From assembly GCA_001179505.1 (NCBI GenBank), contig CDMY01000295.1:466506-530505 (forward strand): 64,000 nucleotides of DNA. Reading direction: 5' to 3'. Shown here one piece after another: positions 27,091 through 48,650 of the stretch (position 1 is its first letter; every line of letters starts with the position of its first letter). The translations under genes were made by a program, and so were the position numbers. The notes under the pieces were generated by a model. The model saw only the letters and a list, made by a program, of their open reading frames with translations, ran no database searches and was not told the DNA's origin. The DNA is from Vitrella brassicaformis CCMP3155. Lineage: Eukaryota > Protista > Chromerida.

Positions 27091-27294
27091 GAAATGAATG
27101 AGCAGGAAAACCGTTCGAAGCTCGCCAGTTCCCCTTAGACTGACAGGGTTTCGAACCCTGTCGGTCTTGCTGAAACCGCTGCTGCCCCGATGGGAGATCT
27201 GAGCTGCTGCAGCGCACGTCAAGACCTGCAGGGCCAAGATCTCCACTGATCTGGCGGATTCGATTCAGGTGAGCACCTCTCTCCCCTGATCGGA

Positions 27295-28634
27295 ATGGAG
27301 CAGCTGGACCCCCTCCCGAGGAGCGTCAAGATAGTCGTCCTGGGCGACGCGGCCGTCGGCAAAACAGAGCTGCTGCGCGTCCTCTGCCCCAACGACAACG
27401 GCATCTCCACCAGCAGCGGCCCGCCTTCGCCCTTCGCTGGCAGCCCGGGGGCACTGATGTCAGCCGAGATCAGGCGGCCCGTGGCGTCGTGGACGTGCGG
27501 CTGTCGGGTGAGCGTGCGCATTCATCCGCTGGAGTCTGGCGATGGCCCCGACGGCGGCAAGGGCGGCGTGCCGGTAGAGTTTTGGGATGTGGGCGGCACC
27601 AGGGCATACGCTGGGGCGAGGAATGTCTTCTTTGATGGGCTTGACGGTCAGTCGGGGGCTACCACACACACACACACAGAGGCGGACAGAGGGAGGATGT
27701 GTGGCTGTTTGGTTTGTGTGGTGCAGGTGTGTTGTTGGCGTATGATGTGTCAAACCTCAAGTCGTATCGCAAGCTGAGCCAGTGGCTGATGGAGGTCTGC
27801 CAGAGGGCCGCACCGCCATCACGGGCATTCTGGCACGGCGAAGCCAACAGGGATAAAGTCGCCCCGGATGAGCAGCCAGGCCCCGCTGCTGCCGAAAGGT
27901 CAGTCCATGGAAGGCACACCCAGACACGTGTGTGTGTGTGTGTGTGTGGATTCTTGTCCCTCTCGTCCTTTCCTGTCTGATCCAATCACTGCAGTGATGA
28001 CGGGCCTGACGTGGAGAATCCGACGACAGGTAGGCAACGCACAAGCCTGCCTGTGGACCCATGTATCTCGCGTTGTGTTGATCTGTGTGGCGTGTGGTCG
28101 TCGTCAACCAACTGCATCCAGCTGAGTGTCTGTTGAGCGGCCGGTGTCCGATCCTGATAGTGGCCAACAAGGTGGACCTCCTGACCTCCCACTCACACAC
28201 ACGGCCCCCGCCACAGCTGCCACCACCACCACCACTTGTCGATAGGTACACACGAGTGCCAGACAACCATGCAGCCAGTCGGCAGCAGAAGTGAGTCTGC
28301 CTCTCTCCATTGTGTGCGTGTCTGTGTGTCAGGTTGTTTGGCAGTCAGAGTCTGCACCACTTCATGGACGACCTGTGGCTCGATTACAGCAGAAAGAAGG
28401 TGACTGACGACTGACGCCTCAGCAGCTGGCTCGCGCCATGCAGCAGCTTCCATGGATGTCTGTCGTGTGCAGGGTTACGAGAGCTCTCTTTTGGCGTCGC
28501 GAGTTCTGCAGCTGCTGCGGGAGGCGCCCGAGATGCAGACGGTGAGTAAGGCGGGCGGCCCACTGCCCACATGCCACAGTGTTTGTTTTTCAGAGTGCCC
28601 GTTCTGGGTGGTACGACATGGGCGTGCTGAATGA
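27295..28634 (+). CDS. RABL3: Rab-like GTPase RABL3, copy A
   Basis: VKIVVLGDAAVGKT, WTCGCRVSV, EFWDVGG, GVLLAYDVSNLKSYRKLSQW and PILIVANKVDL. Confidence 0.82.
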
Positions 28635-29117
28635 GTTCCTGCAGAGGGCTCACCGATTCCACCTGGAGAGAGGCTGACCGCAGACACACACACGCCTGTG
28701 ACTAACGAACGGGCGGGAAGGGCAGTGCGTCGTCTGCTTTGGTGCGGTGTCGGAGAGAGGAGGTGGGACGGGGAAGCGGAGGCGTGCAGGCAGAGAGAGA
28801 GACGTCCGTACGGGTGGGTGTGCGTCAGTGTGTCGGTGCATTGATGTACAGATTATGCATCGGCGGGCGAACATGCAGCCAGAGAGAGACAGAGGCTTGT
28901 TGCATTGAATGCTTTGGCAGGCAGCCTCTCGAGATTTCTCAGCGCGTGCTATGGTGGGGTCAAAAGTGCAGGGTTTGTAAACCTTACCCTTGGACCAGGA
29001 GGACGGAGAGATGAGAGAGCTGTCGCGTTCCCGCCATTTGCGTCTGGACCGTCTCAGAGGCTGTGCGTGCAAGATCTCAGCGGCACGAACGCATCTTTTC
29101 TCCTGCCCGAGGACGAC

Positions 29118-45346: not shown

Positions 45347-46666
45347 TCATTCAGCACACCCATCTCGTACCACCCGGACCGGGCACTCTGAAACACAAAC
45401 ACTGTGACATGTGGGCAGTGGGCCGCCCGCCTTGCTCACCGTCTGCATCTCGGGCGCCTCCCGCAGCAGCTGCAGAACCCGTGACGCCAAAAGAGAGCTC
45501 TCGTAAACCTGCACACGACAGACATCCATGGAAGCTGCTGCATGGCGCGAGCCAGCTGCTGAGGCGTCAGTCGTCAGTTACCTTCTTTCTGCTGTAATCG
45601 AGCCACAGGTCGTCCATGAAGTGGTGCAGACTCTGACTGCCAAACAACCTGACACACAGACACACACACACGGGGGACAGGCAGACTCACTTCTGCTGCC
45701 GACTGGCTGCATGGTTATCTGGCACACCTATCGACAAGCGGCGGTGGTGGTGGCAGCTGTGGCGGGGGCCGTGTGTGTGAGTGGGAGGTGAGCAGGTCCA
45801 CCTTGTTGGCCACTATCAGGATCGGACACCGGCCGCTCAACAGACACTCAGCTGCATGCAGTTGATTGGCAACAACCAGACGCCACACAGATCAACACAA
45901 CGCGAGATACATGGGTCCACAGACAGCTGGCTTGTGCGTTGCCTACCTGTCGTCGGATTCTCCACGTCAGGCCCGTCATCACTGCAGTGATTGGATCAGA
46001 CAGCAAAGGGCGAGAGGGAGAAGAATCCACACACACACACGTGTCTGGGAGTGCCTTCCATGGACTGACCTTTCAGCAGCAGCGGGGCCGGGCTGCTCAT
46101 CCGGGGCGACTTTATCTCTGTTGGCTTCGCCGTGTCAGAATGCCCGTGATGGCGGTGCGGCCCTCTGGCAGACCTCCATCAGCCACTGGCTCAGCTTGCG
46201 ATACGACTTGAGGTTTGACACATCATACGCCAACAGCACACCTGCACCACACAAACCAAATAGCCACACATCCTCCCTCTGTCCGCCTCTGTGTGTGTGT
46301 GTGTGTGGTAGCCCCCGACTGACCGTCAAGCCCATCAAAGAAGACATTCCTCGCCCCAGCGTAGGCCCTGGTGCCGCCCACATCCCAAAACTCTACGGGC
46401 ACGCCGCCCTTGCCGCCATCGGGGCCATCGCCAGACTCCAGCGGATGAATGCGCACGCTCACCCGACAGCCGCACGTCCACGACGCCGCGGGCCGCCTGA
46501 TCTCGGCTGACATAAGGGACCCCGGGCTGCCTGCGAAGGGCGAAGGCGGGCCGCTGCCGGCGGAGATGCCGTTGTCGTTGGGGCAGAGGACGCGCAGCAG
46601 CTCTGTTTTGCCGACGGCCGCGTCGCCCAGGACGACTATCTTGACGCTCCTCGGGAGGGGGTCCAT
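45347..46666 (-). CDS. RABL3: Rab-like GTPase RABL3, copy B
   Basis: MDPLPRSVKIVVLGDAAVGKT...EFWDVGG; same exon structure as copy A. Confidence 0.82.
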
Positions 46667-46869
46667 TTCTGATCAGGGGAGAGAGGTGCTCACCTGCATC
46701 CAATCCGCCAGATCAGTGGAGATCTTGGCCCTGCAGGTCTTGACGTGCGCTGCAGCAGCTCAGATCTCCCATCGGGGCAGCAGCAGGGGATTTGGCGAAC
46801 CCCACTGTTTCAGAAACCCTGAAGTTTTGCGAGCTCGACAGGGTGAATTTTTGAGAGACGAAACAAAGG

Positions 46870-48650
46870 AATGTCACGCCTCCGGCCTCCCGAAGACCTC
46901 CCTGTGTCCTATGACTGCCACTCCAGCTGTCACCTTGCCCTCGGTGGAGTCATCCACGAGCCCGTCGACCAGCAGAACAGAAACACGTGCTGGCTCCATG
47001 CTGCAGCCACCGCATTCAAGTGCAAAGCCGTGCTGAGCGGGTGCCGCGTAGAGGACATCTCGGAGCTCAATTGCCTCTGCAGTGAGGAGAGGCTTCTGCG
47101 GCTGTGTGGCGTGTCTGCTCAAGCCGGAGGGGATCCTGCTCATGCGCTGGAGTGCCTGACTGGAACGCCCCCAAGTCGCCTCGGACACGGACTCGAGCCG
47201 TATGAGCGGGTGAAAGAAATCTGCAGGTACAGTACGGTGGTGGAGGATGCCACAGCATGATGTATGTCTGTGGGCTCTTACCTCGCTCATCAGGTGGATG
47301 ATGCGCGAGGGGCCTGTCGTAGTCGCAAGTGAGCAGCCAGCATCGGTTGGAGTGGTTGAGCAGCGACGGTTGGAGTTGTTCCCCTGTTTGTTTGCACCAG
47401 GCTTTCGCCCACCGGATGATTTCATTGGTTCGTCAACGCAGCCGTATGACTGCCGTTCTGGCCGCACGACATTCCGAGATGGCAACAGCCCCCACGCCGT
47501 GGTGTCCTATGGGTGGAGGAAGACGGAACACGGCATCTGGGTGTAAGTGAGGGCACTAAGACGCAATGGCTGAATGCACATACCCATCACACACACCCAC
47601 ACACACACTCTCTCTCTCTCTCTCTCTCTGTGTGTGTGTGTGTGTTCTCTCTCTCTCTCTCTCTCTCTCTCTCTCCGCGTGTTTGACTGTGCGACTGTGC
47701 CGTGTGTGCAGGTGGCGGGTCAAAAACAGTTGAGGCGACGATTCCAACCTCACAGAGGTCCCGTTCGGACACGACGGCATCGATGAGGAGGTGAAGAAGA
47801 CAATGGAGCTGCGCAGAAGTATAGCAGTGTGTCCTTCCTACCCCTGCAGGTGCTCGGTGTACCTGTTCCCGCCATTCCATACTTCCCCGGCCTCTTCCCT
47901 CACGGGCCTTACCCCTCACGCAATGCGGTCCGTGGCCGTGGGACTCGGCTGGCCATCTCGGAGGAGCCCCTCTGTGGCGTGTGGCGTGAAAGTGACCGCG
48001 ATGAACCGCAGTCCGTTCACATCCTCTGCTTCGTCGACCAGGCGACAGGGGCGCGTAGAGTGGAGGTGCAGTCGACTATGGCGCACCTCTGCTTCTGCGA
48101 GGTGAAAAAGGTTGCCGAGGGAGGGCAGTCAGGGGCCCTGTATGAAGGAAAGGCTCACCTGTCTGAGCCATATGTACGCGACAAGGATCTGCAAAGTGTC
48201 GAAGGGATCGCCCGGTGGGGCAGGAGGGATGTCCCGGTGCGGCTGCGTCAGACGGGAGAGGATGAGTTTGAGCTCTCCTTCCGTCGCCGCACCGGGGGAT
48301 TCATCACATTCATTTTTGAGCGGGTGGCCTTCCCACCAAATGCCGACGGGCAGCAGCAGGGGGAGGGCGCAGACGAGGAAGGGGGAGGGGGGGAGGATGG
48401 GGGAGGGGGAGAGCATGATGTGTTGGTGGTGGATGACAATGAGGGGGAGGAGGGGTACGACGAGCAGTCGCCTATGGTGCTGTGTGATTAGATTTCCTCA
48501 CGAGAATCTCGTTCTTCCGATGTCTGGTCTGTCTGTCTGTATGTCGTGTGTCCCGTGTCTGGCTGACTCTTTGTCTGGCTGGTCCTTCTTCAGGTGACTC
48601 AACTGCTGAGATGCGTGGCTGGTGAATGACTGAACAGTGTCGTTGTGCTA
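46870..48650. repeat. Segmental duplication block 2, copy B (inverted)
   Basis: Reverse complement of ~31930-33670; more diverged than block 1. Confidence 0.85.
46871..48491 (+). pseudogene. Papain-like (C1A) cysteine protease, copy B, with an in-frame TGA in the NSW motif
   Basis: DQQNRNTCWLHA and PHAVVSYGW are intact, but the sequence reads WRVKNS-TGA(47731-47733)-GDD where copy A has NSW. Confidence 0.72.

Follow-up and report, generated by a model that had tools for sequence, protein, structure and literature searches.

An inverted, order-swapped pair of gene blocks in Vitrella brassicaformis CCMP3155, consistent with one local inversion that duplicated both breakpoint regions

Genes and boundaries of the duplicated blocks

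A 64-kb stretch of the Vitrella brassicaformis CCMP3155 genome (hereafter the window, to which all positions refer) carries two blocks of genes, each of which is present twice in opposite orientations. Block 1 includes a Rab-like GTPase gene, a PLAC8-like gene and a third open reading frame (ORF), block 2 consists of a papain-like candidate gene, and the two copies, A and B, are separated by a single-copy segment. By self-blastn of the window, the inverted pair of block 1 was detected as A 27144-31950 against B 46821-41922 and that of block 2 as A 32145-33666 against B 48479-46871, with the diagonals of the two pairs offset by 6.66 kb. The extended limits are 27113-31950 (A) and 41922-46842 (B) for block 1, and 31932 to about 33694 (A) and 46871-48649 (B) for block 2. 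The features of the locus are as follows.

27113-27177, no strand: left margin of block 1 copy A, with old-level divergence, within the upstream DNA that the GOST/GPR107-like gene (- strand) shares with the Rab-like GTPase gene
27178-31835, + strand: young core of block 1 copy A, with the Rab-like GTPase gene (ATG 27295, +), the PLAC8-like gene (+) and the ORF 31140-31664 (-)
31853-31950, no strand: right margin of block 1 copy A, with old-level divergence, beyond a (TACG/TATACG)n microsatellite and ending at the A junction
31932-33694, - strand: block 2 copy A, papain-like candidate gene, with ATG 33666, a stop near 32181 and about 250 bp of 3' flank
32240-32465, - strand: gene-conversion tract in block 2, marked by a mosaic of synonymous divergence (dS), with its B counterpart at about 48159-48384
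33695-41921, no strand: single-copy segment S' (putatively inverted), with unknown ORFs, the N gap 36703-37002, an M14 carboxypeptidase gene (-) and a protein kinase gene (+)
41922-42018, no strand: margin of block 1 copy B, with old-level divergence, adjoining the 3' region of the kinase gene
42040-46784, - strand: young core of block 1 copy B, with the Rab-like GTPase gene annotated as protein P0001 (ATG 46666, -)
46785-46870, no strand: B junction, with 58 bp of old block 1 margin (46785-46842) and then at most 28 bp before the block 2 ATG
46871-48649, + strand: block 2 copy B, papain-like candidate gene, with an in-frame TGA and an extra 59-nt intron
6053-9840, no strand: copy A of an outer inverted pair, subtilase paralogue (self-blastn, tblastx)
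51745-55884, no strand: copy B of the outer inverted pair, subtilase paralogue (self-blastn, tblastx)

The outer subtilase pair was likewise recovered inverted by self-blastn, at 6062-9811 against 55875-51774. With O for this pair and rc for reverse complement, the order is O, 1, 2 on the A side and 1rc, 2rc, Orc on the B side, and the full present order is GOST-[1][2]-X-gap-Y-[1rc][2rc]-R. Self-blastn thus bears out the initial annotation of this DNA, according to which the inverted copy B reads [1rc][2rc] rather than the [2rc][1rc] of a simple inversion. Each locus holds one copy of each block, joined by opposite ends, and the abutment described in that annotation is confirmed, as A has no spacer and that of B does not exceed 28 bp. 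In A coordinates, both ends of the B unit meet at 31932-31950. The core of block 1 is sharply limited at A 27178 and B 46784, and its right end lies at the microsatellite near A 31835 and B 42040.

Upon search of the 72.7-Mb genome (1064 contigs), each block was found exactly twice, in opposite orientations, with no further full copies; the only related sequences elsewhere were a 0.5-kb fragment on contig C311 and distant paralogues on contigs C499 and C613. The PLAC8-like paralogue (C499) and the papain-like paralogue (C613) are not adjoined by other block genes, and therefore give no ancestral order. The C311 fragment is a third copy, of about 500 bp, of the interior of block 1 (30740-31230) located at G000:C311:32843-33367; it is 91-95% identical to A and B, which are 96-98% identical to each other over that part, and may represent either a small dispersed repeat or a transposed fragment.

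Within the window, tblastx detected no paralogy beyond the three inverted pairs, and the segment 33695-41921 showed none with the rest of the window at 1e-6, indicating that it is single copy. A tblastx comparison with a low threshold yielded nothing above noise. A larger palindrome, or a single large inverted duplication, was considered and rejected, because X and Y share no sequence and the same is true of the left flank of A and the right flank of B. When target-site duplications or microhomology were sought at the unit ends, only an 8-mer common to both A ends was found, and none at the B ends; given the divergence, the shared 8-mer is uninformative.

The gene labels of the initial annotation were upheld to different degrees. 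Pfam identified Ras/Roc in P0001, an unnamed product of V. brassicaformis CCMP3155 that is the sole database protein matching the Rab-like GTPase exon and is 100% identical to 46666-46322 plus the downstream exons in block 1 copy B. The start of the GTPase differs between the copies, MEQLDPLPRS in A (27295) and MDPLPRS in B (46666), and only the B form was found as a database protein (P0001). The Pfam match of the PLAC8-like gene is weak, below the gathering score. The exons of the papain-like gene, searched one by one, gave no Pfam or PDB match, and the label C1A rests on a pattern of Cys-Trp, His and Asn-Ser-Trp motifs seen by eye. In the single-copy segment, Pfam matches were obtained for M14 and Pkinase.

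At the B junction the ATG of the GTPase gene (46666, -) and that of the papain-like gene (46871, +) are arranged head to head, 205 bp apart. Papain-like copy B carries an in-frame TGA at 47731-47733 and a 3-nt insertion in place of the Trp of the Asn-Ser-Trp motif, which is intact in A, and is, as judged from these changes, probably a pseudogene. It also contains a 59-nt GT..AG intron (47791-47849) that is precisely absent from A (compare near 32757), a difference that would represent the gain or loss of an intron between the paralogues.

Read support for copy B and the N gap

The assembly was examined by placing Logan contigs and unitigs of the runs X1, X2 and X3, which come from three studies, and of the marine-sediment metagenome X13, on positions 41500-47400. 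A 658-nt unitig over 41555-42172 runs from the kinase flank through the old margin and the microsatellite into 130 nt of the core, with 0 differences in X1, X2 and X3. A 782-nt unitig over 46755-47400 has 88 letters left of the junction between margin and block 2 and over 500 on the other side, and likewise shows 0 differences in the three runs; its start, at the k-1 branch point, lies 30 nt into the shared core, so that the unitig bridges the B junction without phasing the core. In three runs, then, unitigs span either end of block 1 in copy B with 0 differences, so that copy B is not an assembly artefact. In X1 the depth of the B-specific unitigs was 24-34 versus 18-22 for the flanks, and this similarity argues against a half-dose haplotype.

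The run X13, a 2025 marine-sediment metagenome, contained short contigs 100% identical to the locus at 41500-47400, of B type and low depth and bridging nothing, and smaller shares of the Vitrella locus were present in four other sediment runs. To judge from this identity, X13 appears to record the same Vitrella strain, or one very close to it, in the environment.

The edges of the N gap (36703-37002) read ...CCTCCCTCCCCTCCCCT, 300 N, CCCCTCCCCTCCCCTCCCTCC..., an identical (CCCCT)n repeat with the same strand polarity on both sides, which lends modest support to the gap join and its orientation. The C-terminal part of the M14 carboxypeptidase, sought as a gene spanning the gap, was not found on either side of it. 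The midpoint of the block 1 pair (about 36,940-36,980) falls within this gap, and the distances from the core ends to the gap edges are 4868 and 5038 bp. This position is taken as a coincidence (roughly 3%), though an unexplained one.

The layout could in principle be produced by the assembly or scaffolding itself, if repeat copies were mis-phased, a contig were chimeric or the join at the N gap were wrong. Such an origin would agree with the gap lying between the copies and with the block 1 midpoint inside it, and the sequence runs identical between A and B are up to 166 bp long, so that unitigs of k=31 cannot phase the cores. Mis-phased cores, however, would leave the geometry unchanged, and a flipped right-hand contig would render the copy direct, yet still permuted. 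Moreover, all block boundaries sit in gap-free sequence, those of block 1 in copy B are crossed without a difference and at normal depth in three runs, and the gap edges share a simple repeat of the same polarity. An artefact is therefore regarded as highly improbable.

Divergence and gene conversion between the copies

The core of block 1 shows 235 mismatches among 4458 aligned sites, introns and intergenic DNA included, corresponding to a Jukes-Cantor divergence, K(JC), of 0.055, together with 40 indel events. Its dS is 0.07 in GTPase exon 1, 0.06 in the last exon of the PLAC8-like gene and 0.06 in the third ORF. In block 2, dS is 0.72 in exon 1 and 0.57 in exon 2, within a range of 0.45-0.72 for these two exons. 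The initial annotation had described block 2 as the more diverged of the two, and this is true with respect to the core (K 0.055 versus a block 2 dS of 0.45-1.5).

The young core is, however, bordered by old margins on both sides. At the right end, A 31853-31950 and the reverse complement of B 42018-41922 are identical at 67 of 100 positions, a score equalled by 0 of 2260 random window segments. At the left end, the alignment of A 27113-27177 with the reverse complement of B 46785-46842, anchored at the core edge, has a score reached by 2 of 4000 random segments. The 3' flank of block 2, which lies beyond the blastn match, is likewise old, A 31932-32082 and B 48649-48509 being identical at 102 of 157 positions (0 of 2260 random window segments as high). 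The unconverted parts of the two blocks are thus alike, with these margins on one hand and the block 2 dS of 0.45-1.5 on the other.

The last exon of block 2 is itself a mosaic. In successive 25-codon windows its dS is 1.47, 0.66, 0.23, 0.44, 0.06, 0.00, 0.13 and 1.34, and a near-identity tract of about 225 bp, with dS near 0.03 and of 0.0-0.06 over 50 codons, is flanked by values of 0.2-1.5. This mosaic indicates gene conversion, the near-identity tract being recent. The near-identity tracts within older duplicate sequence include synonymous and non-coding sites. On the simplest reading of these divergences, both blocks would have been duplicated long ago, and the 4.65-kb core of block 1 would have been homogenised later by conversion between the inverted copies. 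A clear difference in neutral age between the blocks had been set beforehand as evidence against a common origin; the block-by-block comparison of synonymous and intron divergence revealed a young core between old margins instead, and traced the difference to gene conversion.

A false impression of old age, caused by recent conversion of a papain-like gene from the paralogue on C613, was considered and rejected. Papain-like A and B share 1125 of 1457 positions (77%), versus 807 and 821 of 1457 (55-56%) with the C613 paralogue, and because A and B are mutually closest, conversion from a third gene does not account for their age; the non-coding flanks, too, show old divergence.

These data bear directly on the proposal of two separate duplications, in which an old inverted papain-like copy was joined by a much younger inverted copy of block 1 landing beside it. 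Divergence in the core of block 1 is indeed roughly a tenth of that in block 2. Nevertheless, the idea that block 1 was duplicated separately and recently is rejected on the old-level margins that flank the core on both sides; the homologies meet within 20 bp in A and 28 bp in B, so that two coincidences would be needed; and conversion is demonstrably active in this pair. Once conversion is allowed for, blocks 1 and 2 are equally old, which makes one event likelier than two independent duplications, and the latter are considered very unlikely.

Two further observations concern divergence in the window. In the core, which is otherwise 96-99% identical, a transmembrane exon upstream of the PLAC8 domain (29530-29660, 44330-44470) shows a 30-nt indel and clustered non-synonymous changes, with a non-synonymous divergence (dN) of 0.10 and a dS of 0.13, and could be either an unconverted patch or a site of local diversifying change. 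The outer subtilase pair is a mosaic of the type seen in block 2, with a dS of 0.8-1.5 in most exons and 0.13-0.35 in a long exon.

Origin of the arrangement

When the A unit was permuted (31932-33695 joined to 27113-31950) and compared with the reverse complement of B 41922-48649, a single high-scoring segment pair (HSP) of 6749 columns was obtained at 83% identity. With A left unpermuted, the same comparison gave two HSPs with offsets 6.66 kb apart. The geometry is therefore that of an exact circular permutation, as the initial annotation had described.

From this permutation, and by taking blocks 1 and 2 to have adjoined each other in the parent, the initial annotation had inferred a DNA circle: a contiguous 6.5-kb unit, [1][2] or [1rc][2rc], would have been copied or excised, opened at another point and inserted in inverted orientation about 8 kb away, with gene conversion following. 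A permuted gene order is the accepted signature of this process in wine yeast (PMC3053389) and at cattle KIT (Durkin 2012, cited in PMC3784456). A circle would account for the 6.7-kb match after permutation by a single event; the break is fixed within 20 bp in A coordinates, and a terminal overlap of 17-19 bp is possible. If true, circle formation with local inverted re-insertion would have no earlier counterpart among chromerids or alveolate algae.

The same layout, however, follows from one inversion in which both breakpoint regions are duplicated (dupINVdup), so that the permutation does not discriminate between the two and a circle is unnecessary. There is no reason for a free circle to land 8 kb from its source, and the proximity of the copies is explained by dupINVdup. 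Only one extra copy exists, with no other permuted copy in the 72.7-Mb genome. Neither a circle junction nor multiple phases were detected among the contigs, a weak search that recovered only microsatellite artefact joints of 20-21 nt, none of them matching a unit junction; moreover, given the age of the event, its junctions are no longer informative. What stands of the earlier proposal is thus the permutation and the single event, and an origin through a circle appears unlikely.

In a further scheme, the unit would first have been duplicated in tandem; an inversion with one of its ends in the second unit would have come next, and then a recombinational flip between the inverted copies. On paper this path reproduces the present order with no coincidence of breakpoints, each of its steps is a common type of event, and the inverted repeats have the length and similarity that recombination requires. 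Nevertheless it takes three events instead of one, and no remnant of a tandem stage is visible in the window; we regard it as quite improbable.

The reading favoured here, with moderate confidence, is one old local inversion of the dupINVdup type, followed by gene conversion between the inverted copies. It is preferred because it takes one event, involves no coincidence of breakpoints and predicts copies that are close together: in a dupINVdup the copies necessarily flank a short single-copy segment, here of 8.2 kb. Those of its predictions that are testable on the sequence, namely the order, the abutting blocks, the single-copy middle and the single age, all agree with the locus.

We infer the inversion of the middle segment, the mechanism of breakage and the ancestral order as follows. 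The ancestor would have been L - a - rc(Y) - rc(X) - b - R, where a (4.84 kb) stands for block 1 and b (1.76 kb) for the papain-like gene, with about 8 kb between the two. Two pairs of offset (staggered) breaks would bracket a and b, although template switching during replication would lead to an identical product. The a-S-b piece in the middle would then be re-joined upside down, with a and b also kept on the outer flanks, to yield L a b' S' a' b R, which equals GOST-[1][2]-X-gap-Y-[1rc][2rc]-R. The inner junctions A 31950/31932 and B 46842/46871 would be new ligations, the four outer boundaries would be ancestral, and papain-like copy B would have lost its own upstream DNA on inversion. In later conversion between the inverted repeats, 4.65 kb would have been made uniform in block 1 and about 225 bp in block 2. 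The outer subtilase pair may have arisen as a one-sided duplication at another, larger inversion, likewise followed by conversion, to judge from its divergence.

Several points weigh against the favoured dupINVdup. The read support consists of unitigs of k=31 and covers copy B only, and the orientation across the N gap is given only by the scaffolding and the same-polarity (CCCCT)n repeat. Block 1, at 4.8 kb, exceeds the largest duplication at Drosophila breakpoints (about 1.9 kb), the Chlamydomonas flanks described below being kb-sized. In addition, A 31932-31950 appears to be aligned to both ends of the B unit, an overlap not predicted by plain end joining; this may be an over-extension of an alignment of 62% identity.

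Comparison with known rearrangements

The dupINVdup is a recognised class of complex structural variant in human, with cases on the Mb scale (PMC5338099). In Chlamydomonas reinhardtii CC-503, a dupINVdup on chromosome 16 has flanks of 3.7 and 2.3 kb and an inverted segment of 508 kb (PMC9940879). Both systems have the same order as the Vitrella locus, a b' S' a' b, and the Chlamydomonas flanks are kb-sized like the 4.8 and 1.8 kb found here. As in Vitrella, flank genes occur as duplicates or in truncated form, and a novel head-to-head pair of genes arises at one junction. The Vitrella locus differs in its putatively inverted segment of only about 8.2 kb plus the gap, in contrast to 508 kb in Chlamydomonas and the Mb scale in human, and in its age: the event would be old and probably fixed, whereas the Chlamydomonas and human cases are recent laboratory or de novo mutations. 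Unlike in those cases, the Vitrella copies have since been gene-converted, and the inversion has to be deduced.

In the Drosophila melanogaster group, inverted duplications were found at 17 of 29 fixed inversions, in six of which both breakpoint regions were duplicated, and staggered breaks were proposed as the mechanism (Ranz et al. 2007, PMC1885836). The shortest of these duplications measures 46 bp, the longest about 1.9 kb and the median 321 bp, and they accompany large inversions (PMC1885836). The likeness to Vitrella lies in the inverted duplication of formerly unique, mostly genic sequence at breakpoints that occur together, and in the decay of one duplicate, frequent in Drosophila and matched here by papain-like copy B with its in-frame stop. 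On the other hand, one Vitrella flank is 4.8 kb long and holds three apparently intact genes, while those of Drosophila do not exceed about 1.9 kb.

Cattle KIT colour-sidedness and wine yeast region B resemble the present locus in that one copy is a circular permutation of the other. In those cases the copies are found on other chromosomes or at several loci, in more than one phase, and the contiguity of the parent segment is known; in Vitrella there is one copy, inverted and 8 kb away, and the contiguity of a parent is an assumption only.

With respect to its later history, the locus resembles inversion breakpoints of the herring, where high-identity cores lie inside older inverted duplications (PMC11499932). 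The likeness consists of a core 95-97% identical within diverged margins and of a dS mosaic along genes. The Vitrella case is on a smaller scale, at 4.65 kb, and the evidence comes from two sequences. The arms of sex-chromosome palindromes are a further example of the concerted evolution of inverted repeats.

The locus probably belongs, then, to a known kind of rearrangement, the dupINVdup or staggered-break inversion, and it teaches that circularly permuted gene order alone is not evidence for a DNA circle. Converted cores should not be used to date duplicates, and the pattern a b' ... a' b is worth searching for. On the favoured reading, the event would have duplicated three apparently intact genes, made a putative head-to-head promoter region of 205 bp and probably killed one gene copy, and its arms would have exchanged sequence by gene conversion over a long time. 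The locus would thus provide, in a free-living relative of the apicomplexan parasites, a clean, two-sided example of an inversion duplicating the DNA at both breakpoints.

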